Assembly (NCBI GenBank): GCA_010909165.1 | Contig: MU008193.1 | Location: 124,001-188,000 of the forward strand | Origin: Anthoceros angustus | Lineage: Eukaryota; Plantae; Anthocerotophyta | Reading direction: 5' to 3' | Length of the DNA: 64,000 nt | Shown: positions 19,332 to 43,338 of the stretch, one piece after another | Layout: each line of letters begins with the position of its first letter | Numbering within the stretch: the first letter of the stretch is position 1 | Notes under the pieces: generated by a model | What the model was told of the DNA's origin: nothing | The model's database searches: none | Seen by the model: the letters and a program-made list of their open reading frames with translations, nothing else | Translations under genes and position numbers: made by a program

Positions 19332-20400
19332 TAGTGGCTGCACAGAGCATATGACTCCTAGAAGAGATTGGTTTCTCACGTATGATCCTTTATAGGAGAA
19401 GAAACCAGTTCATATTGGTGACAACTTCACCATTCTGGGTGTTGCTACAGACATTGTACAAATCCATATACAAATCCAGATACAAGACGTTATTGCCATG
19501 TAAAAGATGTATTACATGTCCCTGGCCTTTCTCAAAATTTGCTATTTGCACATCAGGCCACGTTGAAGGTTGGCAACTCCATTACCTTTTCTAGTCAAGG
19601 TTGTAAAGTAAAGTTGCAAGAATCTTATGGCCAAAGCTTGCAATTTGTATGTCGTCCTGTTGGATGCCTTTATTCTATAGCTCGCAGTCTAGCTCCTTAG
19701 ACTGTTGGTCAATCGGATACTGTAACTTTGCCTTCAGGTCCTCCTTCATTCAACCTAGTCACAGATAACAAGCTAAGTCAACATACCACATTGGGGCATT
19801 TGAGGTTAACTTATCCCCACGTTTAGGGCTTACATAAAATGCAGAAGCACCAGATGGTTATAGCTTTATAACCTCCGCTGTCTAACTTGTCTTTCTGCAC
19901 TGGTTGCCTTGTTGGCAAACAACACAAGCAACCCTATCCAAGGTTAGCTTCTACTACATCTCACCCACTTGAGGTTGTTCATGCTGACTTATGTGGCCAC
20001 ATGCAAACACCTTCCCTTGCTGGCATATTGTATATGTTTGTTATTCTAGATGACTCTAGCCACTTTACTACCCTCTACTTTCTCACTCATAAGTCAGAGG
20101 CCTTTCCTAGTTTTAAAACATTTCAGGCCTTCGCTGAAAATCAAACTGGCCAGAAAATTAATTTTTTTCGGTCAGACAATTTAAAGGAACTAACTTCTCA
20201 AGGTTTTGAAGCCCATTCGATCAAATGTGGCATTCAACATCAGAAGATTGTGCGTTATCCACATCAACAATTGGGCAAGGCGGAGCACCGCTGTACGCAG
20301 CTCTTTGGTTACAGCTCATCTTCCACATTCCTTATGCGCTGATGCTGTAGCCACAGTTTGTTATGTGCAAGTACCTTTTGCTCGGTTATGTTCTTTGAAT
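19332..20400 (+). mobile_element. Ty1/Copia pol remnant: C-terminal protease, GAG-pre-integrase and integrase core
   Basis: SGCTEHMTPRRDWF...HIGDN follows the TSD. ORF 19887..20342 gives CTGCLVGKQHK...LEVVHADLCG...ILDDSSHFT...FRSDN. It contains stops and is truncated. Confidence 0.92.
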
Positions 20401-20559: not shown

Positions 20560-21000
20560 AGTCAGCACGGATGAAACAACGGCACATTGGCCAGAAGCCC
20601 GTCCTCTCTATAGTATGATGGAAGAAGAGGGCATTGCTGTTCCCAATGCTGTGACATGTACCATTGTTTGCCTCCTGCAAGCATGTGCAATTGTGGGCTA
20701 GCCCAGAGCTTTGGGGAAGGAAAGGAGCTTCATGCGCAAATTGTGGATCTGAACGAGGACAAATATCAACCTAGCTGATGAATTTCACTCAGAGACTGTT
20801 TGACGGACTTGTCCAAAACGATGCACCCAGAAGGACACTGGCTTGAAGGTGAAGTGTTCATAGCCCACGGTTTGATAAACATGTACTTCAAGTGTGGGGG
20901 CATATATGAATGAAGCACAGCAGGTTTTTGAGGCCTTGCCCGATCGAGAGGAACGTGTTTTCCTGGAATGTCCTGATTGCAGGATACAGCAGCCTAGGTA
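20560..21000 (+). pseudogene. Degraded PLS-class PPR fragment
   Basis: Broken PPR-like codons (LLQACA, EGEVFIAHGLINMYFKCG, AQQVFEAL, NVFSWNVLIAGY). Paralogous blocks lie at 22400-22830 and 25950-26230. Confidence 0.7.
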
Positions 21001-21349
21001 TCTGATCGTGTGTCGGATATCTCATGTAATGCTTTTTTGTAGTGACTGGGTTTTATTCTAGGAAGATCAAAACGTGATTACGTACATGGTAAACGAAAGC
21101 CACACAAAACGTTCATCAAGTCAGTCTTGGTGCCAATCATGGGGAACCTTGGACAGCAGCTTGCACATAGAAGTGTCCAATTGGACATGTATGATACTGA
21201 TCTGATAATTCTGACCTCCGCTGCTGATATCCTTATAATTATTATCTGATAATTAGGGACACACCTACACCCAGTACCCTTCACGTGCCTGTCGTGTGTT
21301 TTGCCGATAAGATTCGGTTAGGGGACAAGGCAGTCCGCAGTCCGAGAGT

Positions 21350-21430
21350 ATGTGGGCTCCATGCTCTACTGCGTTGGCGGGGGAGAGCAGGGGAGTCTGC
21401 TGGCCTACGACCTGGAGCAGGGCAGCTGAT
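21350..21430 (+). pseudogene. Fragment of an F-box paralog
   Basis: Translates VGSMLYCVGGGEQGSLLAYDLEQGS, versus VGSVLYCVAGSGNLLAYDLERGS in the F-box gene at 23111-24301. Confidence 0.7.
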
Positions 21431-21499
21431 TTGCTGATATCAAGTTCACAGAGTTCACCGGGGCAACCAAGATTGCGTGTCCCACAGGACGAGACGGGT

Positions 21500-21960
21500 C
21501 CCAGCAGGCACCCGCTTACGTACTGATGGCCAATGTCTCCGCAGATGCAGGTGGGTGGACGGATGTAGATAGGATTGAAACAAAGAGAATGGTCGCAGGA
21601 GCTAATAAGAATTAAACCTGCAGTGGCGACCATTAGGTGAATAAGGAAGTACATCATCTGTTTCTGGTGGGCGAAAGGAGAGAGGACATTGCGCCAAAGC
21701 TAGAGAGCACGACCACACTTCTGAAGCAGGAAGGAGGCCACTTACCTCACACAAAGATGGTGCAGAAGCCAGTGTCCGAAAAGGAAAAGAAAGATGTGCG
21801 TTGTGGGCATGCTGAGAAACTAGCTCTGGCGTTTGGTCTGTTGAACAGTCCGAATGGGCACCTCTGGTGGTAATGAACAATCTATACGCATGTGCAGTGT
21901 GACTGCCACAGTTCCGTGTGCATAGATTCGCAGCTGGTTGTTGTACTCGTGAGGGTCGAC
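21500..21960 (+). pseudogene. Relic E2-DYW:KP segment
   Basis: QAPAYVLMANVSADAGGWTDVDRIETKRMVAGANK...LKQEGGHLPHTK...CGHAEKLALAFGLLNSP, with frameshifts; homologous to the C-termini of the PPR array. Confidence 0.9.
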
Positions 21961-22269
21961 TATAAGAATAATGGAGGACTAGCCCCTGCTCAACTGTGTA
22001 CGCCAGAGAATGGGTATTGCTTTCGGTGAATGTGCTTGCTTAACTCCAGCGCTGTCCAAAAGGAAGCATGAACATAGATGGCTAACACTGCTCCACATCG
22101 GATCATAACATAGATGATCAAAATCGAATAAACTTTTCTGTGTCTGAAGGAATTTTTGGGATTCGATTTGTGGATCCAACAACACTTGCTACAGCATGTG
22201 GGCCGCAGACCATGGCCCATGCGCATGAGCTACAGCATGTGGGCCCCAGATAATGGCCCATAGTTCATG

Positions 22270-26650: not shown

Positions 26651-26819
26651 GGAGTCGTCCAAAACTCTGGAGTGTGCACTAAGGGCATGAGCTGAACCCT
26701 TGTCCGAACCCCGGGACAGAAGAACACATGTATGGGCGCGCCTCCCAAAGCATGTGGGCCTCACGTCATGCCCATTACACATACACACATGTAGATATGT
26801 ACAATCGTCTTATCCGACT

Positions 26820-27200
26820 CGCCTTTGGCACTTGCAGTTGGCCGTCGGTGCTGGCTCCAGGGTAAGGACGAAGCGTCGGCGAGGACTACTCCTCACCCAA
26901 CAAATTGGTGTGTGTACAAGGGCTCTACCAAGAGTTCCCGCTCACCTCGCCTCACGGAGTGCAAGCAAGCAAGCCTCAAGGTACTGCAGTGTAAGGAGCC
27001 CAGCATTTCCACTTCCACTTCCGATTCCGAGAAATTTTGTGGGTGGGGACGGGACGACTCCGCAGCTGGTTGTTGCAGTTGTAAGTCTGCCCAATGCTCA
27101 ACTGTGTTCGACACAATGTGGGCATGGCTTTCACGGTGAATGTGCTTGCTTAACTACAGCGCTGTTCAAAGGCAAGCATGAACATCGATTGCTAACACTG
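26820..27200 (+). pseudogene. Collapsed PPR-DYW gene: 5' leader fused directly to the last DYW codons and 3' flank
   Basis: The leader (…GAGAAATTTTGTGGGTGGGGACGGG) is followed within ~10 nt by CGCAGCTGGTTGTTGCAGTTGTAAG (AAGCCSCK) and an array-type 3' flank. Confidence 0.85.
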
Positions 27201-27641
27201 CTCCACCTCGGATCGTAACAGAGATGGGTCACCAAAATCGAATGGATCACTCTCTTTTTGAAGGAATTTTAGGCCTATTTGCTTATTTGCTTTGTGAACC
27301 CTTAACCAAGACCAGTTCACTCACAGGTTTCTGTCCAAAACTCTCCGGGGGAATATCACCATAAAAAAAAAATGGTTGGTTTGTACTAGGTATTGAGGTA
27401 TGTATGCTGTGCTGCATGAGCTACAGGATGTGGGCCCCACATCATGTCCATGGGCCATGAGGCCATGAGGCCATGATGCATATATGTTCACGCTCCCAGT
27501 TTGTATCGCAGTTGGCCTACGCCGTCCCAGTTCAAGCTCTCCAACGAAGTGGTGTGTGTACGGGGATCCTAGGAGGAGGCATTGTTGTTCGCAACTGGAG
27601 TTGGCGTACGCCGTCCCGGTGCTCGCTCAAGGGTGAAGGCG

Positions 27642-30134
27642 ATGCGTCGGCGGGGACTGTTGCTCACTCCTCAGATTGGTTTGTGTACAAGGATTCTACG
27701 AGGGGTTCCCGCTCACCTAGCCTCAGGGAGTGAATTCCCAGCAAACAAGCAAGCCTCCAGGTGCAGCAGTGTAAGGAGCCCAGCACTTCCACCTCCGAGA
27801 GATTGTGTGCGTGGGGAAGGGTTATCCGGCCATGGTGGTCGCCAGGAGCAGGAGGAGAAGCAGGAGCAGCAGCACAGGTGGCAACAATTTTTTCTGGACC
27901 CTACCATGTGGTGGGACAACAGACGAGATAAGAAGAGCTCCCGTTCGCCTGACTTCCGGCGTAAGGGCTCCGGGGAGGTGCTGTGGCTGAACAACATGTT
28001 TAAGCCAGCTTGGGTTGATGAGCAGCTCGTTTCCTTGGATATGCAGATGGGTCATGGTGCCCCCTCGCCTCCTGAGTATAGCTGTCAGGGTAAACCTGAG
28101 CCTGGCAGGCGGGCAAGATCCGAAATGGGCGTCGTTACGGCTGTAACCGTGAGCAGGTTATGTCAGCAGGGGAAGCTCTCTGAGGCCGTTGGAGCCCTGG
28201 AGTATCTGGTGCTGACAGACTCTGCTATTTCTCAGTCTCTGTTGCACACTGTGCTGAAACTGTGTGCGGCTAAGAAGGATCTGTTTATGGGGCGACGAGT
28301 TCATGACCTCGCTGTCAAACTCGGGCACGAGTCGGATGCTTTCTTGGGGAACCATATCTTGCGCATGTATGCATGTGGAGGTAGTCTGCACGAGGCGATG
28401 GATGTGTTCAGCAGGGTGGTCAAACCAAATGCCTTCATGTGGTCTTCCATAATCTCCGCTTATGCTAAGCATGGGAAACCTAGGGAGGCTATACAACTGT
28501 ACCATGAGATGCGTAGGTCAGGAGTGAAGGCGGATGGCCATGTTTTTGTAGCTGCCCTTCAAGCTTGTGCATTTGCCGCTGACTTGGAATCTGGCAAAAA
28601 AGTGCACTGTGATGTTGTGCACAGTGGCACTGCCCCTGACGTGTTTGTCGGCAACTGCCTTGTGGAGATGTATACAAAGTGTGGTGAAATGAAAGATGCT
28701 CGCCAGGTTTTTGACAGCATGGCCTCAAAGAATGTGGTGACATGGACAACCCTGATTGCTGGGTATGCAAAATGTGGTGAACTGAAATATGCACGCCAGG
28801 TTTTTGACAGCATGGCCTCAAAGGATGTGGTGACATGGAATGCCCTGATTGCTGGGTATGCAAAATGTGGTGAACTGAAATATGCACGCCAGGTTTTTGA
28901 CAGCATGAACACAAAGAATGTGGTGACATGGAATGCCCTGATAGCTGGGTATGCACAGCAAGGGCTAGGACATGAGGCGCTTGTTCTGTATGGACAAATG
29001 GAGCAGGAGGGCCTCATTTTGGCTGACCATGTTACTTTTGCTTGCCTTCTGAAGGCCTGTGCAAGCACTGGTGCCTTACAGAAGGGCAGGCAGCTGCACT
29101 CACAGATTGTGGAAAGAGGACTGCTGGATGACGTAGTGTTGGGCACCTGCCTGGTGGACATGTATGCAAAATGTGGTGAACTGAAAGATGCACGCCAGGT
29201 TTTTGACATGGCCAAAGGATGTGGTGACATGGAATGCCCTGATATCTGGGTATGGTACTTGTGATGAAGGTCACAAGGCACTAGCTTGTTTTGAGGAGAT
29301 GTTAGTTGCCGGTATTCAGCCTGATGGTGCTACTTTTACTTGCCTTCTAGTAGCATGCAGTCATGAGGACTGGTCCATGAGGGTCGCAAGCACTTTGATT
29401 CCATGGCTGAACAGCATGGCATCAAACCCACTATTGAGCATCACAACTGTATGGTTGATCTTCTTGGGCGTGCGGGCCATTTAGATGAGGCAGAGAAGAT
29501 GCTTTTATCATGTGAGGGCCAAAGTGATGTCGTGGGGTTGATGTCTTTGCTAAATTCTTGCAAAAGTCATGGGGATATAGAAAGGGCGATGAGGTGTTTT
29601 GAAAGCATTGTTAGATTGGACCCCCAGCAGGCCCCCGCTTACGTACTTATGGCCAATGTCTATGCAGACGCAGGTAGGTGGACAGATGTAGATAGAATTG
29701 AAGCACAGAGAGTGGTAGCAGGAGCTAATAAGAAACCTGCAGTGGCGACCATCGAGGTGAATAAGGAGGTACATAGATTTTTGGTAGGAGAGAGGAGAGA
29801 GGATATTGCGCTCAAGGTAGGGAGCACGAACACTCGGCTGAAGCAGGAAGGAGGGCATTTGCCTCACACAGAGTTGGTGCTGAAGCCAGTGTCTGAAAAG
29901 GAGAAGGAAGAGGTGCTTTGTGGGCATGCTGAGAAGCTAGCTCTGGCGTTTGGTCTGTTGAACACTCCGAGTGGGACACCTCTGGTGGTGACGAAGAATC
30001 TGCGCATGTGCAGTGACTGCCACAGTTCCACGGAGATTATGTCAAGGCTTGAACAGAGAGACATTGTTGTAAGGGATGGGTACCGTGTGCATCGATTCGC
30101 AGCTGGTTGTTGCAGTTGTAAGGGTCGACCGTGA
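27642..30134 (+). CDS. PPR-A: transit-like leader, PDF motif, PLS PPR array (incl. two SS motifs), P2-L2-S2-E1-E2, DYW:KP ending GRP; frameshifts at ~29210 and ~29370
   Basis: ORFs 27582..29264, 29188..29484 and 29403..30134 give KKPAVATIEV, CGHAEKLALAFG, RMCSDCH and GCCSCKGRP*. The true start may lie upstream of 27642. Confidence 0.92.
27879..28028 (+). other. OSB-type PDF motif in PPR-A (also B 30805-30954, C 33615-33764, D 37072-37221, E ~39507-39650)
   Basis: WQQFFLDPTMWWDNRRDKKSSRSPDFRRKGSGEVLWLNNMFKPAWVDEQL matches the recalled OSB PDF pattern WQxFFxxPxxWWDNRxxKxxxxxPDFKxKxxGExLWL…PxW. Confidence 0.85.
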
Positions 30135-30474
30135 GAAAAATGGAGGACTACCCAAAGTTCAACTGTGTAGGTATGCCAGAGACTAGGTCTTTCTTTCGGG
30201 GGTGAATGAGCTTGCCGAACTCCATCGCTGTCCAAAGGGAAGCATGAACACAGTTGGCTAACGCTGCTCCACCTCGGATCAGAACAGAGATGATCAAAAC
30301 CGAATGAATCTCTTTCTGAAGGAATTTTAGGCCTGTCTGATTTGTGAACACTTCACAAGCCAGTTTCTGTCCAAAACTTCGGAACCGGAAATTTTTCCTT
30401 TGAGGGTACACGAGAAAGAAATCGTTTCCGCGAGTCCACATCTAGGTATGGGCTGAATACGTGGGCCCCACATC

Positions 30475-32971
30475 ATGTCCACGGGCCTTGCCACATCTCT
30501 GTCCACGCTCCTCGTTGCACTTACAGTTGGCCTACGCCGTCCCAGTTCTCGCTCCAGGCTGAAGGCGATGCGTCGGCGTGGACTGTTGTGGACCCAACAG
30601 ATTGGAGTGTGTTCAGGGATTCTACAAGGAGCTCCTGCTCACCTCACCGCAGGGATTCAACCCCCGGCAAACAAGCAGGCATCCAGGTGCAGCAGTGTAA
30701 GGAGCCCAGCATTTCCACTTCCGAGAACGTGTGTGGGTGTGGACGGGTTATCCAGCGATGATCGTCTCCAGGAGCAGTACCAAGAGCAGGAACAGCAGCA
30801 CTTGTGGCAACAATTTTTCTTGGAACCTACCATGTGGTGGGACAACAGACGAGATAAGATGAGCTCCCATTGGCCTGACTTCCGGCGCAAAGGATCCGGC
30901 GAAGTGCTGTGGCTAAACAACATGTTTAAGCCAGCTTGGGTTGATGAGCAGCTTGTTTCCTTGGATGTGCAGATGAGTCATGGTGCCTCTACTTCCAACT
31001 CAAGGTCCCCAGATAAGCATGAGCCTGGCAGGCGTGCACCAGCGGAAATGAGCGCCGTGACGGCTAGAACCGTGAGCATGTTATGTCAGCAGGGGAAGCT
31101 TTCTGAGGCCGTTGGAGCCCTGGAATATCTAGCGCAGACAGACTCTGCCATTTCTTTGTCTCTGTTTTACACTGTGCTAAAACTATGTACAGCTAAGAAG
31201 GATTTGGTTGTGGGGCGACGAGTTCATGATGTGACTGCCAAACTTGGGTATGAGTCGAGTGCATACTTGGGGAACCATATCCTGCGCATGTATGCATGTG
31301 GAGGGAGTCTGCAGGAGGCCATGAATGTGTTCACCAGGGTGGGCAAACCGAATGTCTTCATGTGGTTTTCCATAATCTCGGCACATGCTAAGCATGGGAA
31401 ACCCAAGGAGGCCATACAACTATACCATGAGATGCGTAGGTCAGGAGTGAAGGCTAATTGTCATGTCTTTGTAGCTGCCCTTCAGGCTTGCACATTTGCT
31501 GCCGATTTGGAATCTGGCAGAGAAGTGCACTGTGATGTGTTGCACAGTGGCGTTCCTCCTGACTTGTTTGTTGGCAACTGCCTGGTGGACATGTATGCAA
31601 AATGTGGCGACCTGAAAGATGCACGCCAGGTTTTTGACAGCATGGTCACAAAGGATGTGGTGACATGGACGGCGCTGATTGCTGGGTATGCACAGCAAGG
31701 GCTCGGACATGAGGCGTTGAATCTGTCTGGGCAAATGGAGCAAGAGGGGCTGGTTTTGGCTGACTATGTTACTTTTGCTTGCCTTCTGAAGGCCTGTGGA
31801 AGCACTGGTGCCCTACAGAAAGGCAGGCAGCTGCACTCGCAGATTGTCAAAAGAGGATTGCTTGATAAGATTGTGGTGGGCACCTGCCTGTGGAAGCACT
31901 GGTGCCCTACAGAAAGGCAGGCAGCTGCACTCGCAGATTGTCAAAAGAGGATTGCTTGATAAGATTGTGGTGGGCACCTCCCTTGTGGACATGTATGCAA
32001 AATGTGGTGAAGTGAAAGATGCACGCCAGGTTTTTGACAGCATGGTCACAAAGGATGTGGTGACATGGAATGCCCTGATATCTGGGTACGGGACTTGTGA
32101 TGAAGGTCACAAGGCCCTAGCTTGTTTTGAGGAGATGTTAGCTGCCGGTATTCAGCCTGATGATGCTACTTTTGCTTGCCTTCTAGTAGCATGCAGTCAC
32201 GAGGGACTGGTCGATGAGGGTCGCAAGCACTTTGCTTCCATGGCTGAACAGCATGGCATCAGACCTACTATTGAGCATCACATTTGTATGATTGATCTTC
32301 TTGGGCGGGCAGGCCATTTAGATGAGGCCGAGAAGATGCTATTTTCATGTAAGGGCGAAAGTGATGTTGTGGGGTTGATGTCTTTGCTGAATGCTTGCAA
32401 AATTCATGGGGATACAGAGAGGGCAGTGTGGTGTTTTGAAAGCATTGTTAGGCTAGACCCCCAGCAGGCGCCGGCATATGTGCTTATGGCTAATGCCTAT
32501 GCAGATGCAGGTAGGTGGACAGATGTAGATAGGATTGAAACACAGAGAATGGCAGCACGAGCTAACAAGAAACCTGCAGTTACGACCATTGAGGTGAATA
32601 ATGAGGTCCATAGATTTCTGGTGGGAGAAAGGAGAGAGGATATTGCCCTTAAGGTAGAGAGCACGAATGCACGTCTCAAGCAGGAAGGAGGCCACGTACC
32701 TCACACAAAGTTGGTGCTGAAGCCACTGTCTGAGAAGGAAAAGGAAGATGTGCTTTGTGGGCATGCTGAGAAACTAGCTCTGGCATTTGGTCTGTTGAAC
32801 ACTCCGAGTGGGACACCTCTGGTGGTGACGAAGAATCTGCGCATGTGCAGTGACTGCCACAGTTCCACGGAGATCATGTCAAGGCTTGAACAAAGAAACA
32901 TCGTCGTAAGGGATGGGTACCGTGTGCATCGATTCGAAGCTGGTTGTTGCAGTTGTAAGGGTCGACCGTGA
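30475..32971 (+). CDS. PPR-B: PDF-PLS-E-DYW:KP(GRP); frame broken only by a 94-bp tandem duplication at ~31795-31980
   Basis: ORF 30475..31959 (ATG start, R/S-rich leader) and ORF 31796..32971 ending EAGCCSCKGRP*. Confidence 0.93.
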
Positions 32972-33383
32972 GCATAATGGAGGACTATCCAGTGCTAAAC
33001 TGTTTCCGACAGAGAATGGGTGTTGTTTCGGGGTGAATGTGCTTGCTTAACGCCATCCCTTTCCAAATGTAAATGCGTATGAAGAAACTTAGATGGCTAA
33101 CACTGCTCCACGTTGGATCATAACAGAGATGATCAAAATCTAATGAATCCTTCTCTTCCTGAAGGAAGTTTTCGACGAGAACAGCTTGCACATGGCTTTC
33201 TGTGCAGACCTTCGACCTGGGTGTCTAACGAAACACTGTTTGCGCTATGCTTCTACCACTTTCATATGGGCCCCACGTCATGCCCATGATACATCCAATA
33301 TGTTCACAACTTCACATCCCGCGCACCCTGTTGGCAGTTGCAGTTGGCCGAAGCCGTCCTAATTCTTGTTCCAGACTACGGCG

Positions 33384-36300
33384 ATGCGTCGACGGGGATC
33401 ATTGTGGACCCAACAAATTGGTGAGTTTACAAGGATACTACGAGGAATTCCCGCTTACCTCACCTCAGGGAGTCATTCCCCGGCAAACAAGCAAGCCTTC
33501 AGGTGCAGCAGTGTTAGGAGCCAAGCACTTCCACTTTCGAGAAATTGTGTGGGTGTGGACGGGTTATCCAGCCATGGTTGTCGCCAGGGGCAGGAGCAGG
33601 AGCAGCAGTACTTGTGGCAACAATTTTTTCTGGACCCTACCATGTGGTGGGACAACAGACGAGATAAGAAGAGCTCCGGTTCCCCTGACTTCCGGCGTAA
33701 GGGGTCCGGCGAGGTGCTGTGGTTAAGCGACATGTTCAAGCCAGCTTGGGTGGATGAGCAGCTCGTTTCTTTAGATATGCAGATGGGTCATGGTGCCTCT
33801 CCTTCCGGGTCCAGCTCTCCGTATAAGCCTGAAGCTGGCAGGCGTGCAGGATCGGAAATGGAAGCCGTAACGGCTGTGACCGTGAGCACGTTATGTCAGC
33901 AGGGGAAGCTTTCTGAGGCCGTTGGAGCCCTGGAATTTCTGGCGCATACAGACTCTGCTATTTCTGTGTCCCTGTTTTGCACTGTGCTGAAACTGTGTAC
34001 AGCTAAGAAAGATTTGGTTTTGGGGCAACGAGTTCATGATCTCAGTGTCAAACTTCGGTACGAGTCGAATGCGTACTTGGGGAACCATCTCTTGCGCATG
34101 TATGCATGTGGAGGTAGGCTAGAGGAGGCCATGGATGTGCTGACCAGGGTGAGCAAACCAGATGCCTTCATGTGGTCTTCCATTATCTCCGCGTATGCTA
34201 AGCATGGGAAACCTGAGGTGGCCATACAATTGTACCATGAGATGCGTAGGTCAGGAGTGAAGGCAGATGCTCACGTCTTTGTAGCTGTCCTTCAAGCTTG
34301 TGCATTTGCGGCCGACTTAGAATCTGGCAGAAAGGTGCACTGTGACGTGTTGCACAGTGGCATTCCTCCTGACTTGTTTGTTAGCACCTGCCTTGTGGAC
34401 ATGTATGCAAAATGTGGTGAACTGAAAGGTGCAAGCAAGGTTTTTGACAGCATGCCAATAAAGAATGTGGCGACATGGAATGCCCTGATAGCTGGGTATT
34501 CCCAGCAAGGGCTCGGACATGAGGCCCTTGTTGTGTATGGACAAATGGAGCAGGAGGGCCTGCTTTTGGCTAACCATGTTACTTATGTCTGCCTTCTGAA
34601 TGCCTGTGGAAGCACTGGTGCTTTACAGAAGGGTAGACAGCTGCACTCATTGCTTGTCGAAAAAGCATTGCTCGATAACGTAGTGGTGAGCACCTCCCTG
34701 GTGGACATGTATGCAAAATGTGGTGAAGTGAAAGATGCACGCCAGGTTTTTGACAGCATGGTCACAAAGGATGTGGTGACATGGAATGCCCTAATATCCG
34801 GGTATGGTAATTGTGATGAAGGTCACAAGGCACTAGCTTGTTTTGAGGAGATGTTAGGTGCTGGTATTCAGCCTGATGGTGCTACTTTTGCTTGCGTTCT
34901 AGTAGCATGCAGTCATGAGGGACTGGTAGATGAGGGTCGCAAGCACTTTTATTCCATGACTGAACAGCATGGCATTAGACCTACTATTGAGCATCACAAT
35001 TGTACCATGAGATGCGTAGGTCAGGAGTGAAGGCAGATGCTCACGTCTTTGTAGCTGCCCTTCAAGCTTGTGCATTTGCGCCGACTTGGAATCTGGCAGA
35101 AAGTGCACTGTGATGTTGCACAGTGGCATTCTTCCTGACTTGTTTGTTGGCACCTGTCTTGTGGACATGTATGCAAAATGTGGTGAACTGAAAGATGCAA
35201 GCCAGGTTTTTGCCAGCATGCCATCAAAGAATGTGGTGACATGGAATGCCCTGATAGCTGGCTATTCCCAACAAGGTCTTGGACATGAAGCACTTGTTGT
35301 GTACGGACAAATGGAGCAGGAGGGCCTGCTTTTGGCTAACCATGTTACTTTTGCTTGCCTTCTTAGGGCCTGTGGAAGCACTGGTGCCTTACAGAAGGGC
35401 AGGCAGCTGCACTCATTGTTGGAAAGGACTGCTGATAACGTAGTGGTGGGCACCTGCCTGGTGGACATGTATGCAAAATGTGGTGAACTGGAAGATGCAC
35501 GCCAGGTTTTGACAGCATGCACAAAGGATGTGGTGACATGGAATGCCCTGATATCTGGGTATGGTACTTGTGATGAAGGTCACAAGGCACTAGCTTGTTT
35601 TGAGGAGATGTTAGTTGCCGGTATTCAGCCTGATGGTGCTACTTTACTTGCCTTCTAGTAGCATGCAGTCATGAGGGACTGGTAGATGAGGGTCGCAAGC
35701 ACTTTTATTCCATGACTGAACAGCATGGCATTAGACCTACTATTGAGCATCACAATTGTATGATTGATCTTCTTGGGCGTGCGGGCCATTTAGATGAGGC
35801 ACAGAAGATGCTTTTGTCCTGTGACAGCCAAAGTGATGTCGTGGGATATATCTCTTTGCTGAATGCTTGCAAAATTCATGGGGATATAGAGAGGGGGATG
35901 TGGTGTTTTGAAAGCATTGTTAGGCTGGACCCTCAGCAGGCGCCTGCATATGTGCTTATGGCCAATATCTACGCAGATGCAGGTAGGTGGACGGATGTAG
36001 ATAGGATTGAAGCACAGAGAATGGTAGGAGGAGCTAACAAGAAACCTGCAGTGGCGACCATTGAGGTGAATAAGGAGGTACATAGATTTCTGGTGGGGGA
36101 AAGGAGAGAGGATATTGCCCTCAAGCTAGAGAGCACGAATGCACGTCTCAAGCAAGAAGGAGGCCACGTACCTCACACAAAGTTGGTGTTGAAGCCACTG
36201 TCTGAGAAAGAAAAGGAAGATGTGCTTTGTGGGCATGCTGAGAAACTAGCTCTGGCGTTTGGTCTCTTGAACACCTGAGTGGGACACCTCTGGTGGTAAC

Positions 36301-36442
36301 GAAGAATCTACGCATGTGCAGTGACTGCCACAGTTCCACGGAGATCATGTCAAGGCTTGAACAGAGAGACATTGTTGTAAGGGATGGGTACCGTGTGCAT
36401 CGATTCGCAGCTGGTTGTTGCAGTTGTAAGGGTCGACCGTGA
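33384..36442 (+). CDS. PPR-C: PDF-PLS-E-DYW:KP(GRP) with a ~770-bp internal tandem duplication and several frameshifts
   Basis: ORFs 33366..35030, 35068..35658 and 35712..36278. GGT CGA CCG TGA lies at 36431-36442. Confidence 0.88.
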
Positions 36443-36779
36443 GAAAAACGAAGGACTGCCCAGTGTCACTGCGTGTGCTGGAGAATAGGTTTTGCTTTCC
36501 GGGTGAATGTGCTTGCCATAGCTGACAAACGGAAGCAAGAACAAACGTAGATGGCAAACACGGCTTCCTTGGTCAGAAATCAAAGATAGTTGATCAAATG
36601 AATCTCGCTCTTTCTGAAAAATGTTTTTGGCCGATGTGATTTGTGGCCAACAACAACAAACAGATCTGTTTCTGTCCAAATCGTCGAATCCATGGAAGTT
36701 GTTTTCCCTTTTTCTGCCCCCCACAGCATGCCGAAATTCATCTACATATTCATGTCCATAAACATATGTCTAAGCCGGA

Positions 36780-38916
36780 TGTGGAGCTCCCAGTTGGCTC
36801 TTGCAGTTGGCCTACGCCGTCCCGGTTCCCCCTCCAGGTTAAGGGGATGCGTCGCCGAGGACTATAGTGGACCCAGCAAATTGGTGTCTCTACAGGGATT
36901 CTACGAGGAGTACATGCTCACCTCACCTCAGGGAGTCAATCCCCGGCAAGCAAGCAAGCCTTCAGGTGCAGCAGTATAAGGAGCCCAGCATATTCACTTC
37001 CGAGAAATTGTGTGGGTGGGGACGGGTTATCCAGCGATGGCCGTCGTCAGGAGCAGGTGCAGCAGCACTTGTGGCAACAATTTTTCCTGGACCCTACCTT
37101 GTGGTGGGACTGCAGACGAGATAACAAGAGCTCCTGCTCGCCTGACTTCCGGTGCAAGGGGTCCGGCGAGGGGCTATGGGTAAAGAGCCTCTTCAAGCCA
37201 GCTTGGGTTGATGAGCAGCTTGTTTCCTTGGATATGCAGATGGGTCATGGTGCCTCTCCTTCCGAGTCCTTTTCTCCGGGTAAGCCTGAACCTGGTAGGC
37301 GTGCTGGGTCAGAAATGGGCGTCGTTACGGCTGTAACCGTGAGCAGGTTATGTCAGCAGGGGAAGCTTGCTGAGGCCGTTGGAGCCCTGGAATATCTGGC
37401 CCAGACAGACAGTGCCATTTCTCAGTCTCTGTTTTACAGTGTTCTGAAACTGTGTACAGCAAAGAAGGATCTGGTTGTGGGGCGACGAGTCCATGACCTC
37501 ACTGTCAAACTCGGGTACGAGTCGGATGCTTTCTTGGGGAACCATATCTTGCGCATGTATGCATGTCGAGGTAGGCTGCAGGACGCCATGGATGTGTTCA
37601 CCAGGGTAGGCAAACCAGATTCCTTCATGTGGTCTTCCATAATCTCTGCATATGCTAAGCATGGGAAACCTAACGAGGCCATACAACTGTACCATGAGAT
37701 GCGGAGGTCAGGAGTGAAGGCGGATGGTCATGTCTTTGTAGCTGCCCTTCAGCTTGTGCGTTTGCGGCCGATTTAGAATCTGGCAGAAAAGTCCACTGTG
37801 ATGTATTGCACAGTGGCATGGCGCCTGACTTGTTTGTTGGCAACTGCCTGGTGGACATGTATGCAAAATGTGGCCAACTGAAAGATGCACGCCAGGTTTT
37901 GACAGCATGAACCAAAGGATGTGGTGACATGGAATGCTGATTGCTGGGTATGCAAAATGTGGTGAACTGGAAGGTGCACGTCGGGTTTTCGACTGCATGA
38001 ACTCAAAGGATGTGGTGACATGGAATGCTCTGATAGCTGGGTATGCAGCAAGGCTTGGACATGAGGCGCTTGTTCTGTATGGACAAATGGAGATGGAGGG
38101 CCTCATTTTGGCTGACCATGTTACGTTTGCTTGCCTTCTGAAGGCCTGTGCAAGCACTGGTGCCCTACAGAAAGGCAGGCAGCTGCACTCACAGATTGTG
38201 GGAAGAGGACTGCAGGATACTGTTGTGCTAGGCAGCTGCCTGGTGGACATGTATGCAAAATGTGGCGAACTCGAAGATGCACGGCAGGTTTTTGACAGCA
38301 TGGCCTCAAGGGATGTGGTGACATGGAATGCCCTGATTGCTGGGTATGCACAGCAAGGACATGAGGCGCTTGTTCTGTATGGACAAATGGAGCAGGAGGG
38401 CCTCATTTTGGCTGACCATGTTACTTTTGCTTGCCTTCTGAAGGCCTGTGCAAGCACTGGTGCCTTACAGAAGGGCAGGCAGCTGCACTCACAGAGAATG
38501 GTAGCAGGAGCTAACAAGAAACCTGCAGTGGCGACCATTGAGGTGAATAAGCAGGTACATAGATTTCTGGTGGGAGAAAGGAGAGGATATTGCGCTCAAG
38601 GTAGAGAGCACGAATGCACGTCTGAAGCAGGAAGGAGGCCACGTACCTCACACAAAGTTGGTGTTGAAGCCACTGTCTGAGAAGGAAAAGGAAGATGTGC
38701 TTTGTGGGCATGCTGAGAAGCTAGCTCTGGCGTTTGGTCTCTTGAACACCTGAGTGGGACACCTCTGGTGGTAACGAAGAATCTACGCATGTGCAGTGAC
38801 TGCCACAGTTCCACGGAGATCATGTCAAGGCTTGAACAGAGAGACATTGTTGTAAGGGATGGGTACCGTGTGCATCGATTCGCAGCTGGTTGTTGCAGTT
38901 GTAAGGTCGACCGTGA
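36780..38916 (+). pseudogene. PPR-D: PDF-PLS fused directly to the DYW:KP N-terminus; P2-L2-S2-E1 and most of E2 deleted; frameshifted
   Basis: ORF 37012..37776 (PDF + PPR). ORF 37934..38680 reads GRQLHSQ|RMVAGANKKP. A GRP-type end lies at ~38905-38916. Confidence 0.85.
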
Positions 38917-39219
38917 GAAAACGAAGGACTGCCCAGTGTCACTGCGTGTGCTGGAGAATATTTTGCTTTCCGGGTGAATGTGCTTGCCATCTGACAAACG
39001 GAAGCAAGAACAAACGTAGATGGCAAACACTTCCTTGGTCAGAAATCAGATAGTTGATCAAATGAATCTCGCTCTTTCTGAAAATGTTTTGGCCGATGTG
39101 ATTTGACAACAACAACAAACAGATCTGTTTCTGTCCAAATCGTCGAATCCATGGAAGTTGTTTTCCCTTTTTCTGACAGCATGCCGAAATTCATCTACAT
39201 ATTCATGTCCATAAACATA

Positions 39220-41953
39220 TGTCTAAGCCGGATGTGGAGCTCCCAGTTGGCTCTTGCAGTTGGCCTAGCCGTCCCGGTTCCTCCAGGTTAAGGGGATGCG
39301 TCGCCAGGAGCAGGAGCACTTGTGGACCCAACAAATTGGTGTGTACAGGGATTCTACGAGGAGCTGCTCACCTCACCTCAGGAGTCAACCCTGGCAAACA
39401 AGCCTCCAGGTGCAGCAGTGTAAGGAGCCCAGCACTTCCACTTCCGAGAAATGTGTGGTGGGGACGGGTTTCCAGCGATGGTCGTCGCCAGGAGCAGGAG
39501 CACTTGTGGCAACAATTTTTCTGGACCCTACCATGTGGTGGGGACAACAGACGAGATAAAGAGCTCCCGTTCGCCTGACTTCCGGCGTAAGGGGTCCGGC
39601 GAGGCTGTGGTTAAACAACATGTTTAAGCCAGCTTGGGTTGATGAGCAGCTCGTTTCCTTGGATATGCAGATGGGTCATGGTGCCTCCTTCCGAGTCCTC
39701 TCCGGATAAGCCTGAACCTGGTAGGCGTGCAGGATCGGAAATGGGCGTCGTAACGGCTGGAACCGTGAGCATGTTATGTCAGCAGGGAAGCTTTCTGAGG
39801 CCGTTGGAGCCCTGGAATCTCTGGCGCAGACAGACTGCCATTTCTCAGTCTCTGTTTTACACTGTGCTAAAACTGTGTACAGCTAAGAAGGATTTGGTTG
39901 TGGGGCGACGAGTTCATGATCTCACTGTCAAACTTGGGTACGAGTCGAATGCATACTTGGGGAACCATATCTTGCGCATGTATGCATGTGGAGGTAGGCT
40001 GCAGGAGGCCATGGATGTGTTCACCAGGGTAGGCAAACCAGATTCCTTCATGTGGTCTTCCATAATCTCTGCATATGCTAAGCATGGGAAACCTAACGAG
40101 GCCATACAACTGTACCATGAGATGCGGAGGTCAGGAGTGAAGGCGGATGGTCATGTCTTTGTAGCTGCCCTTCAGCTTGTGCGTTTGCGGCCGATTTAGA
40201 ATCTGGCAGAAAAGTCCACTGTGATGTATTGCACAGTGGCATGGCGCCTGACTTGTTTATTAGCAATTGCCTGGTGGACATGTATGCAAAATGTGGCCAA
40301 CCGAAAGAGGCACGCCAGGTTTTTGACAGCATGACCACAAAGGATGTGGTGACATGGAATGCCTTGATTGCTGGGTATGCAAAATGTGGTGAACTGGAAG
40401 GTGCACGTCGGGTTTTCGACTGCATGAACTCAAAGGATGTGGTCACATGGAATGCTCTGATAGCTGGGTATGCACAGCAAGGGCTTGGACATGAGGCGCT
40501 TGTTCTGTATGGACAAATGGAGATGGAGGGCCTCATTTTGGCTGACCATGTTACGTTTGCTTGCCTTCTGAAGGCCTGTGCAAGCACTGGTGCCCTACAG
40601 AAGGGCAGGCAGCTGCACTCACAGATTGTGAAGAGGACTGCTGGATACTGTTGTGGGCACTGCCTGGTGGACATGTATGCAAAATGTGGCGAACTCGAAG
40701 ATGCACGGCAGGTTTTTGACAGCATGGCCTCAAGGGATGTGGTGACATGGACGGCGCTGATTGCTGGGTATGCTGACCAAGGGCTCGGACATGAGGCACT
40801 CGTTCTGTATGGACAAATGGAGAAAGAGGGGCTGGCTTTGGCTAACCATGTTACTTTTCCTTGCCTTCTGAACGCCTGTGCAAGCACTGCTGCCTTACAG
40901 AAGGGCAAGCAGCTGCACTCTCAGATTGTGGAAAGAGGACTGATGGGTGAAATTCTGGTGGGCACCTGCCTGGTGGACATGTATTCAAAATGTGGCGAAC
41001 TGGAAGATGCACGCCAGGTGTTTGACAGCATGGCCACAAAGGACGTGGTTACATGGACGGCCCTGATATCTGGGTATGGTACTTGTGATGAAGGTCGCAG
41101 AGCACTAGCCTGTTTTGAGGAGATGTTAGCTGCTGGGATTAAGCCTGATGGTGCTACTTTTGCTTGCCTTCTAGTAGCCTGCAGTCATGAGGGACTGGTG
41201 GACGAGGGTCGCAAGCACTTTGATTCCATGGCTGAACAGCATGGAATCAAACCTACTACTGAGCATCACAATTGTATGATTGATCTTCTTGGGCGTGCGG
41301 GCCATTTAGATGAGGCACAGAAGATGCTATTGTCATGTGAGGGCCAAAGCAATGTCGTGGGGCTGATCTCTTTACTGAATGCTTGCAAAATCCATGGGGA
41401 TATAGAGAGGGCGATGTGGTGCTTTGAAAGCGTTGTTAGGATAGACCCCCAGCAGGCTCCTGCATATGTGCTTATGGCCAATGCCTATGCAGATGCAGGT
41501 AGGTGGACGGATGTAGATAGGATTGAAACACAGAGAATGGCAGCAGGAGCAAACAAGAAACCTGCAGTGGCGACCATTGAGGTGAATAAGGAGATACATA
41601 GATTTCTGGTAGGAGAAAGGAGAGAGGATATTGCACTTATGGTAAAGAGCACGAACACACGTCTGAAGCAGGAAGGAGGGCACGTACCTCTCACAGAATT
41701 GGTGTTAAAGCCAGTGTGTGAGAAAGAAAAGGAAGATGTGCTTTGTGGGCATGCTGAGAAGCTAGCTCTGGCATTTGGTCTCTTGAACAGTCCAAGTGGG
41801 ACACCTCTGGTGGTAACGAAGAATCTACGCATGTGCAGCGACTGCCACAGTTCCACGGAGATCATGTCAAGGCTTGAACAGAGAGACATTGTTGTAAGGG
41901 ATGGGTACCGTGTGCATCGATTCACAGCTGGCTGTTGCAGTTGTAAGGGTTGA
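39220..41953 (+). CDS. PPR-E: PDF-PLS-E-DYW:KP; 5' third indel-rich, last 574 codons open, ends CKG*
   Basis: ORF 40229..41953 retains HAEKLA and CSDC. The terminus is GGT TGA CCG TGA. The 5' region is a near-copy of PPR-D. Confidence 0.88.
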
Positions 41954-43338
41954 CCGTGAAGGACTGCCCTGTTTCTCAAGAGAAACATACTTGAGATGTT
42001 TTCTGTCGGTGGGTCACGATCCTCGCTGAGGATGCTGGAGCCCCAGTTGTTGTCGACCACTATCTCACTCGCCGCTTCCCTATCACTCGGTCTGTCAGGT
42101 AAGGTTGTCCTTTGTCCCCGCTCCTCTTTTCCATCGCCTCTGATTTCCTCAGTTGGCGCTTGAACACTGACCCTGACATTGAGGGCTTGCCCATTCCCCC
42201 GTGATCACCAGGTGTCCCGGCACGAGCCAAGGTGTCTGCCCACGCTGATGATTTTTTGCGCTTCTCCTTTCTGAAGCCTCCCTCCAAGCTACCCTTCGCC
42301 GCCTAGATGCTTTCGCTTCTCTTTCTGGTCTCTCAGTGAAACTTATCCAAGAGCATGCTGATCCCCCCGAACGCCTCTGCCCTCCCACCTTGTGTCCCAT
42401 ATTCCTTGCCAGAAAATCTGTTCCATGTTTCTCTTGGTGTTCCCCTGCAGCCCAAGATGAGAATGCGGAGATATGTCAACTATCTACAACTTGACTTGAC
42501 TTGATGGATGTGGCCGTAAGCATAGAAAAGGATTTTCATACAGAGATCTAGCTATGAAACGGTGATTGCTGCCCTGCCAAACCCTTCAACGTATTCACAG
42601 TAAAATTGAACTGAGTGTGGTACTCGGTCCAAGGCTGTCAGACTCGTCTGGCAAGGCCACGGGCTGGCAGCAGAAGAACGTCTCTGTGGAGACCCCTCTG
42701 TCGAACTTCGCGGATTTGCGACACATTCACGTTGAAGGCTGCCTGCCGTCAGTTTCTCAGGTAGATGTCTCAAAACGGATCTGGAGCTGCTGTCTGCGAC
42801 CTGCTCCAGCTGCGAGTAGAATTGTCAATAGTCTGCCTTCAGGATCCGGGGGGATTCTTGGCTCTGTGTATGTTTGTTCTGTGCATGGATGGGATCAGAG
42901 CAATTTACTTCATTCCAAGCCTCTTTCCCGGCTTGGAGTCGGGGAGAAATCGAAGATTGACAATTTTGGGCAGCAACAAGCCATGCTCCCAAAGTGATTC
43001 GAACAGCTCCAAGACCATGCGGCAAGCAATTAGGACCACGGAGCCAAAAAATGCGGCACAAATTTAGTTCACGGACCGAAGATGGTAATTTTCAGGACAC
43101 AAGATGTCGGTAGTTGCGAAGAGAAAACAAAAGCAGTTCAAACTTCTCAAAAAGTTCCAAGCAACCAGCAGAGGTTGCAGTTACATCCGTCCGATCACAA
43201 CTGTAGCAAGAGAAAACATTAACCGACTCAGTTTATGTACAATTTATCCTGTCCTCAGGACGGGCTCTCCCTCCTCAGTACAGAGATTCGCAAAGCACGA
43301 GATCGCATCGCCCTTCTCGAGATATCGTTGTAAATTCT

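Follow-up and report, generated by a model that had tools for sequence, protein, structure and literature searches.

The tandem array in the window (i.e. the whole 64,000-nucleotide stretch of Anthoceros angustus DNA that was analysed) is probably best explained as a decaying set of genes in which a PDF motif, known from the plant OSB proteins, is fused to PPR editing factors and most likely provides an accessory grip on single-stranded nucleic acid. Such PDF-PPR fusions are real, of old origin and widespread in seed-free plants, and they are apparently new to the literature.

Organization of the array

The array (~27.6–42.0 kb, + strand) contains five copies (A–E) of a PLS-PPR/E/DYW:KP gene (Table 1). 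As an earlier note on this DNA had described, each copy carries a Trp-rich block of ~55 amino acids between an R/S-rich leader, which opens with MRRRG, and the first PPR. The block lies ~75 residues past the putative start; tblastn and regex scans found it on the + strand in all copies, beginning at the positions listed in Table 1 for A–D and at 39507 in E. Among copies A–D, the blocks are 81–92% identical across 62 residues.

PPR, E_motif and DYW_deaminase were matched in the array ORFs by Pfam, and the C-terminal parts of the genes encode an E motif and a DYW deaminase with a KP pair, HAE, CSDCH and a GRP end. The zinc-ligand motifs HAEK and CSDCH were found in copies A, B and E. All components of a PLS-class PPR editing factor (i.e. 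PPR tract, E motif and DYW deaminase with HxE and CxxC) are thus present, split across ORF pieces in every copy. The hallmarks of the DYW:KP subclass are found in copies A and B (KKPAV, HAE and GRP end), and copy E ends in CKG followed by a stop.

Table 1. Features of the array and of its upstream flank (positions in the window)
Feature	Position	Strand	Basis
Older decayed PPR/DYW:KP fragment with internal stops, upstream of the array	20594–21966	+	tblastn
Leader-only remnant without PDF block, 5' edge of the array	26856–27065	+	tblastn, 56% identity to copy B leader residues 27–95; within ORF 26700–27218
Copy A: leader, PDF, PLS-PPR, E, DYW:KP, GRP end; broken	27642–30134	+	ORFs 27582–29264 and 29403–30134 in the same frame; DNA alignment with B, C and E; Pfam
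PDF domain, copy A (53 aa from first Trp)	27879–28037	+	OSB profile matches; model pLDDT 93.6; fits OSB1–4 PDF segments
Copy B: architecture as copy A; sole break a 94-bp tandem duplication	30475–32971	+	ORFs; duplication comparison
PDF domain, copy B	30805–30963	+	block scans; alignment
Copy C: leader, PDF, PPR to the equivalent of copy B residue 580, then restart at ~residue 313	33366–36439	+	ORFs; tblastn
PDF domain, copy C	33615–33773	+	block scans; alignment
Copy D: leader stop, frame change, C-terminal PPR/E mostly deleted	36835–38905	+	
PDF domain, copy D; Arg or Asn replaced by Cys at several sites	37072–37230	+	block scans; alignment
Copy E: leader and PDF block broken; PPR/E/DYW:KP in one ORF, 40229–41953	39219–41956	+	ORFs; Pfam

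Breaks and decay of the copies

The array is decaying, and each copy is disrupted as assembled: none of the five has one ORF spanning the block to the DYW:KP domain, and the reading frame from the start codon over PDF and PPR to the terminus of DYW is interrupted in all of them. A reading of the array as a set of working genes is thus not supported. The narrower observation, that block and PPR motifs share one ORF, stands for copies A–D (A, 27582–29264; B, 30475–31959; C, 33366–35030; D, 37012–37776), but no copy's ORF reaches the DYW:KP domain, and in copy E the leader and PDF block (39507 to ~39650) are spread over three frames with stops.

The breaks differ among copies. In DNA alignment with B, C and E, copy A has lost 5 bp near 29210 and 1 bp at 29366; the ~52 codons in between are frameshifted and include a stop at 29262–29264. 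Copy C has at least three frame changes and its DYW end lies in a different frame; its restart at ~residue 313 is an internal duplication or a hybrid. Copy D has an in-frame stop inside the leader, a frame change at ~37752 and a PDF block under relaxed constraint. The C-terminus of copy E reads CKG, stop, P, which indicates that the Arg codon of GRP has become a stop. Reads over copies A and B come as short contigs, thousands in number, of a family with very many copies, and the depth over the intergenic parts is ~0. Some of these contigs carry an extra G behind 29366, the site of the 1-bp deletion in copy A.

The only defect of copy B is a 94-bp tandem duplication (units 31792–31885 and 31886–31979, 100% identical), and omission of one unit in silico yields a single 800-aa ORF ending in CKGRP. 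This clean ORF, the perfect identity of the two units and the strong constraint on the PDF block of copy B would fit a working gene whose break is an assembly artefact. We regard this as doubtful, because the breaks in the other copies (i.e. the 5-bp deletion, segmental rearrangements and stops) are unlike sequencing-error patterns. As all copies in the window are broken, the array itself gives no evidence of present function.

Identity of the Trp-rich block

PDF is described as the ssDNA-binding motif of the OSB proteins of plants (Zaegel et al. 2006, cited in PMC6963530 and PMC4166229); OSB2 is also known as PTAC9. A HMMER profile search with the block against 1.84 billion proteins matched 584 proteins, 157 of them at E ≤ 1e-10, and the matches include named OSB proteins (e.g. 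Populus OSB1-like, E 6e-24; Euphorbia OSB3, E 6e-22). At the sequence level, the resemblance to the PDF family exceeds chance by far. The OSB OB fold is present in 80 of the best 150 of the 584 matches. Copies A–C keep the invariant columns D18, R20, D30 and W50 of a 144-sequence PDF alignment, as well as its near-invariant columns W6, P13, W16, K23, P29, F31, L40, W41 and P48. The block is 37–43% identical to the PDFs of Arabidopsis OSB1–4 and shares with them the signature W..P..WWDNR..K...PDF.(H/R)K...LW...P.W over ~50–60 residues. No Pfam model matches the block in the array ORFs, and a word-indexed search with the copy A block region gave no match, whereas the exhaustive HMMER search did find relatives.

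The predicted PDF unit (~60 residues) consists of a helix, a small beta element and a second helix, and the AlphaFold model of the block has a pLDDT of 93.6. In Swiss-Prot, the sole Foldseek matches are the PDF segments of Arabidopsis OSB1–4 (TM 0.74–0.89, rmsd 0.9–1.2 Å, both sides predicted), and a fold comparison with AFDB clusters agrees with this result. No related solved structure was found in the PDB by sequence search, Foldseek or a wide VIA-align search (best Z 3.3). The HMM and structure searches against OSB proteins that the earlier note had proposed thus bear out its identification: as judged by profile matches and predicted fold, the block genuinely belongs to the PDF-motif family known from plant OSB proteins.

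The surrounding architecture is different. In OSBs the PDF motif lies C-terminal to an SSB-like OB fold, whereas the array proteins have a single PDF at the N-terminus, ahead of the PPR tract and the deaminase domain. By Pfam, the array proteins lack an OB fold, and the SSB OB fold (PF00436) has no match in any ORF of the window; PPR motifs come after the block instead. The array proteins are not OSB proteins, and the PDF module is the only feature common to both.

Fold, tether and constraint

In the model, the linker between the PDF unit and the PPR helices has a pLDDT <50 and is flanked on both sides by confidently predicted structure. The PDF motif thus forms a unit that folds independently and is joined by a disordered tether of ~25 residues to the N-terminal end of the PPR solenoid. 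An intron separating the block from the PPR tract was ruled out, given the one common ORF in copies A–D and in intact relatives.

Among copies A, B and C, dN/dS is 0.10–0.13 in the PDF block (54 codons, non-independent pairs), 0.71–0.85 in the leader and 0.28–0.41 in the PPR part. The block is the N-terminal part under strongest constraint in these copies, and was under strong purifying selection during their divergence. Its location shortly after the putative start, behind a presequence-like leader, could mean that it belongs to a cleaved targeting peptide or a neutral leader and plays no part in the mature protein. We consider this highly improbable, because the block is a confidently folded domain in the model, its dN/dS is a fraction of that of the leader, and PPR proteins of lycophytes, ferns and Sphagnum alike have conserved the PDF motif.

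Distribution and origin of PDF-PPR proteins

Co-occurrence of PDF and PPR in other plants, a check that had been suggested together with the original observation, was seen in 85 proteins from Diphasiastrum, Selaginella, ferns and Sphagnum. All 58 matches of a search with a Diphasiastrum PDF region were PDF-PPRs, the PDF motif is present in 30 of 120 PPR relatives, and a Pteridium transcript ORF contains both PDF and PPR. An intact PDF-PPR-DYW:KP protein of 753 residues (P0103), 43–50% identical, was found on a Logan contig from another organism. The array shares with the PDF-PPRs of Diphasiastrum complanatum, Selaginella, Adiantum, Ceratopteris, Pteridium and Sphagnum the order N-terminal PDF (one to three copies, as in OSBs), linker and PLS-PPR tract. 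By contrast, an E motif or a canonical DYW:PG domain forms the C-terminus of most of those proteins, and a KP/GRP end like that of the array occurs only in P0103. A DYW domain is present in 18 of the 85 proteins (17 canonical DYW:PG and one KP). This rules out a DYW:KP-specific link of the PDF motif, and the special tie to U-to-C editing that had been put forward for the array is not upheld.

In the phylogenetic tree, PPR-linked PDFs group together and apart from OSB PDFs, and the topology test does not reject a single clade of PPR-linked PDFs (p-AU 0.76). The joint clustering of PPR-linked PDFs from several plant lineages rules out that an OSB fragment was captured recently. PDF-PPRs form an ancient subfamily that is rich in members in lycophytes, ferns and Sphagnum and comprises E-type, DYW:PG and more rarely DYW:KP proteins; among the proteins seen, the fusion is apparently restricted to seed-free plants. 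PDF units also occur in varied other architectures (i.e. OB-fold proteins, multi-PDF proteins and one dinoflagellate protein).

Possible roles of the PDF unit

PPR tracts bind RNA with their N-terminus toward the RNA 5' end, which would place the PDF unit upstream of the recognised sequence. The most likely function of the unit is that of an accessory grip on single-stranded nucleic acid, independent of sequence, which would (i) increase affinity or dwell time and (ii) hold the target unfolded. We rate the chance that its partner is RNA 5' of the PPR footprint at somewhat below even; nucleoid ssDNA is a clearly less probable partner, and other roles take up the rest.

If the OSB-like ssDNA preference were kept, the editor would be anchored to single-stranded organellar DNA (e.g. 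transcription bubbles, R-loops or replication intermediates), resulting in editing on nascent RNA. OSB1 and OSB2 are reported to favour ssDNA over dsDNA or RNA (PMC4166229), which favours such a nucleoid tether over an RNA grip, and the PDF motif is reported to suffice for binding of ssDNA (PMC6963530, PMC4166229). Copies A–C keep every conserved residue of the motif, the predicted flexible tether would permit binding in trans, and the number of PDF copies in PDF-PPRs fits avidity for a polymer. However, the separate clustering of PPR-linked PDFs implies that their specificity may have shifted, and we consider anchoring to the nucleoid rather unlikely. Still less probable is the broader view that the PDF motif brings PPR-DYW editors, KP-type included, onto organellar ssDNA at R-loops and transcription bubbles and makes editing nucleoid-coupled in seed-free plants; in the extreme case, ssDNA as well as RNA would be presented to the deaminase/transaminase fold. 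The PDF motif might also let the protein associate with itself or dock to OSB or to other partners in the editosome, and so replace helper proteins in seed-free plants. Its occurrence in many architectures, as is often seen with adaptor modules, and the tetrameric state given for AtOSB2 in PMC6963530 are consistent with protein contacts. Yet ssDNA binding is the only published activity assigned to the motif, and base stacking would be in keeping with the aromatic and basic residues that it conserves, so that a role as a protein-contact module seems improbable.

The usual description of a PPR editing factor comprises a targeting peptide, the PPR tract and E/DYW domains. A module at the front end that is conserved, maintained by selection, folded separately and putatively able to bind single strands would add a functional part to these proteins. 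PDF-PPR genes number dozens per genome in lycophytes and ferns, and the PDF unit could explain how editors find or hold their targets in hyper-editing, seed-free plants; it may also be a useful addition to designer PPR editors. With PPR proteins, multi-PDF proteins and a protein from a dinoflagellate, the PDF motif has a wider range than was known. The array locus itself carries the more modest message of a decaying tandem array.

Relation to known editing factors

In hornworts, lycophytes and ferns, the PLS-class PPR-DYW:KP proteins are candidates for U-to-C editing (PMC11845758, PMC9478123). In the DYW:KP subclass, KP replaces PG, Ala or Cys follows the zinc His and the C-terminal triplet is variable; the activity of natural KP proteins is stated as unknown (PMC11845758). 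The array genes resemble this group in their PLS/SS-type PPR tract and E motif and in a DYW-type deaminase domain that has the KP pair, the HAE zinc motif, CSDCH and GRP instead of DYW at the terminus. They differ in that the array copies are disrupted and have an additional N-terminal PDF motif, of which the KP papers and the editing-factor survey that were consulted make no mention.

Our literature search found no paper describing a fusion of PDF and PPR. In a 2026 kingdom-wide survey of editing-factor domain fusions, the term 'single-stranded' is absent and the fusion passages name no PDF or OSB domain. Within these sources, the suggestion that a PDF-PPR-deaminase architecture had not been described is therefore sustained. 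Other PPR fusions with accessory domains are known, e.g. PPR-SMR, and also RRM-PPR and MORF-PPR (the latter two in PMC3858433 and PMC13386178). They resemble the array proteins in combining a PPR tract with a second nucleic-acid-related or helper domain, and the array fusion differs from them in the identity of that domain and in its N-terminal position. The PDF-PPRs of the seed-free plants compared above are annotated in databases merely as hypothetical or PPR proteins.

Array organization and gene content

The five copies (A–E) form a tandem array of plus-strand genes with a period of ~2.4–3.5 kb. A tblastn search of the window with the N-terminal 170 aa of copy A gives five matches (at 27699, 30625, 33441, 36904 and 39366), and the Trp-rich block that separates the R/S-rich leader from the first PPR motif is 81–92% identical among copies A–D across 62 aa. 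Pfam places PPR motifs 3' of the block within the same ORFs and identifies the C-terminal pieces as E_motif plus DYW_deaminase, while no Pfam model matches the block in the array ORFs. The C-terminal domains carry the KP pair, the zinc histidine context HAE, CSDCH and a GRP terminus, and the KP pair, HAE, CSDCH and a GRP-type end are the published marks of the DYW:KP class (PMC11845758). The Trp-rich block on a PPR-DYW:KP array that the earlier note had described is thus confirmed.

Neither the block nor PPR motifs follow the leader-only remnant, which represents the upstream edge of the array. Farther upstream, an integrase-like ORF (19887–20342) is followed just downstream by a degenerate DYW:KP fragment interrupted by stops (21490–21966). 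This fragment resembles an older member of the array that was disrupted close to a retroelement.

Coordinates of array features in the window
Feature	Position (nt)	Strand	Remark
Leader-only remnant	26856–27065		tblastn match at 26934 with copy A N-terminal 170 aa
Copy A, ORF 1	27582–29264	+	same frame as ORF 2
Copy A, ORF 2	29403–30134	+	same frame as ORF 1
Trp-rich block start, copy A	27879	+	
Trp-rich block start, copy B	30805	+	
Trp-rich block start, copy C	33615	+	
Trp-rich block start, copy D	37072	+	
Trp-rich block start, copy E	39507	+	

Identity of the Trp-rich block

A profile built from four blocks and scored against 1.84 billion representative proteins yields 584 matches at E ≤ 1e-3 (157 at E ≤ 1e-10), including proteins named 'protein OSB1, mitochondrial-like' in Populus (E 6e-24) and 'organellar single-stranded DNA binding protein 3' in Euphorbia (E 6e-22). 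Among the best 150 of the 584 matches, 80 have an OSB-type OB fold, 13 have PPR motifs and 57 have neither. The consensus of 144 aligned PDF segments is the classical LW...F.NP..WWDNR..K..P..PDFKHK.TGE.LWL.....P.WV...L, and the blocks in the window keep all invariant and near-invariant positions of this alignment.

An AlphaFold2 model of the block, built with the 144-segment alignment, has a pLDDT of 93.6 and consists of a helix (residues 2–11), short strands and a second helix (51–61). Its sole matches among Swiss-Prot models are the PDF segments of Arabidopsis OSB1, OSB2, OSB3 and OSB4 (TM 0.74–0.89 by query, rmsd 0.9–1.2 Å, 37–43% identity); since no solved structure resembling the block was found, this comparison sets prediction against prediction. 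OSB-like plant proteins are also matched among the AFDB clusters. Sequence, the architecture of the matching proteins and predicted fold together identify the block as the OSB PDF motif, which bears out the OSB-type assignment made in the earlier note. The array genes are PPR editing factors with an extra N-terminal OSB-type domain.

The block as a folded domain

Pairwise dN/dS ratios among copies A, B and C (Nei–Gojobori; small counts, non-independent pairs) are 0.10–0.13 in the 54-codon PDF block, 0.71–0.85 in the leader and 0.28–0.41 in the first 140 PPR codons; the contrast between block and leader is large despite the small counts. Copy D is relaxed (0.31–0.45). In a second model, covering the block and first PPRs and built on 28 homologues, residues 1–63 form a confident PDF unit, residues 64–87 a disordered linker (pLDDT <50), and confident PPR helices start at residue 93. 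These ratios and this layout indicate that the block behaves as a domain folding on its own, joined to the PPR helices by a flexible tether. Purifying selection and the folded-unit model effectively exclude the block being a transit peptide or mere presequence.

State of the five copies

A single ORF from start to DYW end is present in none of the five copies. In copy A, two deletions (5 bp near 29210, 1 bp at 29366) lie between the two ORFs and leave ~52 codons out of frame, including a stop. Copy B carries a 94-bp tandem duplication with 100% identical units (31792–31885 and 31886–31979). Copy C extends to the position matching B residue 580, then begins again near residue 313, with at least three frame changes; copy D has a leader stop, a frame change at ~37752 and a large internal deletion. 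In copy E, the PDF block is scattered across three frames with stops, and a 574-aa PPR-E-DYW ORF ends CKG-stop-P (41948–41956), the Arg codon of GRP now being a stop. The locus in its present state is most likely a set of pseudogenes.

Removal in silico of one 94-bp unit from copy B restores a single 800-aa ORF ending CKGRP, and copy B would be the sole candidate for a working gene in the array only if the duplication were an artefact. We regard this as improbable. In-frame tandem repeats measuring either 93 bp (equal to one S-type PPR motif of 31 aa) or 300 bp occur within the PPR tracts (28670–28955, 40282–40474, 37948–38495 and 40375–41078), which implies that tract length shifts through slippage or unequal crossing-over; the out-of-frame duplication of copy B probably arose in this way too.

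Public sequencing runs give, over 27500–33400, thousands of 70–100-nt contigs from a highly multi-copy family. These runs carry four different organism labels, and in them the coding stretches of A and B reach an enormous summed word depth, against almost none in the spacers. Some of these contigs have an extra G behind 29366, the site of the 1-bp deletion in copy A. An exact 348-nt piece across the A–B spacer (30113–30460) occurs in one run, labelled, with a query, as RNA.

Distribution and origin of the PDF-PPR fusion

Of the 120 top-ranking PPR relatives of the N-terminal ORF of copy B, 30 carry N-terminal PDF units. The PDF region taken from a single Diphasiastrum protein gave 58 matches, all of them Diphasiastrum PDF-PPR proteins, and further carriers belong to Selaginella, Ceratopteris, Adiantum, Sphagnum and Pteridium. 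The co-occurrence that the earlier note had proposed looking for in other plants is thus found, by database matches, in lycophytes and ferns, and also in Sphagnum. A transcript-derived ORF of Pteridium places the fusion on an mRNA, and some PDF-PPR proteins have two or three PDF units.

The same note had tied the fusion to DYW:KP editors, which is not borne out. A DYW domain is present in 18 of the 85 PDF-PPR proteins gathered, and 17 of these 18 are canonical (HSE, mostly PG, ending DYW), so the fusion is not special to U-to-C candidates. The only KP/GRP type is P0103, encoded intact by a single ORF of 753 aa on a contig from a different organism; it shares 43% identity with copy A across 509 aa, with its parts in the same order.

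On trees of PDF segments the PPR-linked units cluster (7 label changes versus 47.7 with shuffled labels), and constraining them to a single clade yields a tree that is not rejected and in fact scores better (p-AU 0.76). These 61 alignment columns are compatible with, and no proof of, one old PDF-PPR fusion.

A link between the OSB PDF motif and PPR proteins was not found in the searchable literature, which misses many subscription papers. A 2026 kingdom-wide survey of editing-factor fusions reports PPR proteins fused to MORF, RRM and zinc-finger domains; the term 'single-stranded' is absent from it and its fusion passages name no PDF or OSB domain. The apparent novelty claimed earlier for a PDF-PPR-deaminase architecture therefore holds, in the sense of not found rather than proven absent.

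Possible role of the PDF unit

PPR tracts bind RNA in parallel, with N-terminal motifs 5' and the DYW domain positioned on the base to be edited, so a PDF unit tethered at the N-terminus would contact nucleic acid 5' of the footprint. We tentatively favour, at somewhat below even odds, an accessory role in which the unit grips single-stranded RNA irrespective of its sequence, which may raise affinity or hold the target open. Its main rival, anchoring of the editor to nucleoid ssDNA, seems rather unlikely but is a serious alternative given the reported preference of OSB1 and OSB2 for ssDNA over dsDNA or RNA, the PDF motif being reported as sufficient or responsible for ssDNA binding by OSB1 (PMC6963530, PMC4166229). 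A protein-contact role is less likely still and would be a surprise. The functions suggested in the earlier note go beyond what these data imply.

PDF units also occur in other settings. The database proteins P0009 (Cladocopium sp. Y103, eukprot), P0002, P0003 and P0010 have 7–9 PDF units without an OB fold or PPR motifs. A kinesin-motor protein model from Coptis chinensis (P0051, 1526 aa) carries three PDF units close to the N-terminus; it may represent a genuine fusion or the merging of gene models.
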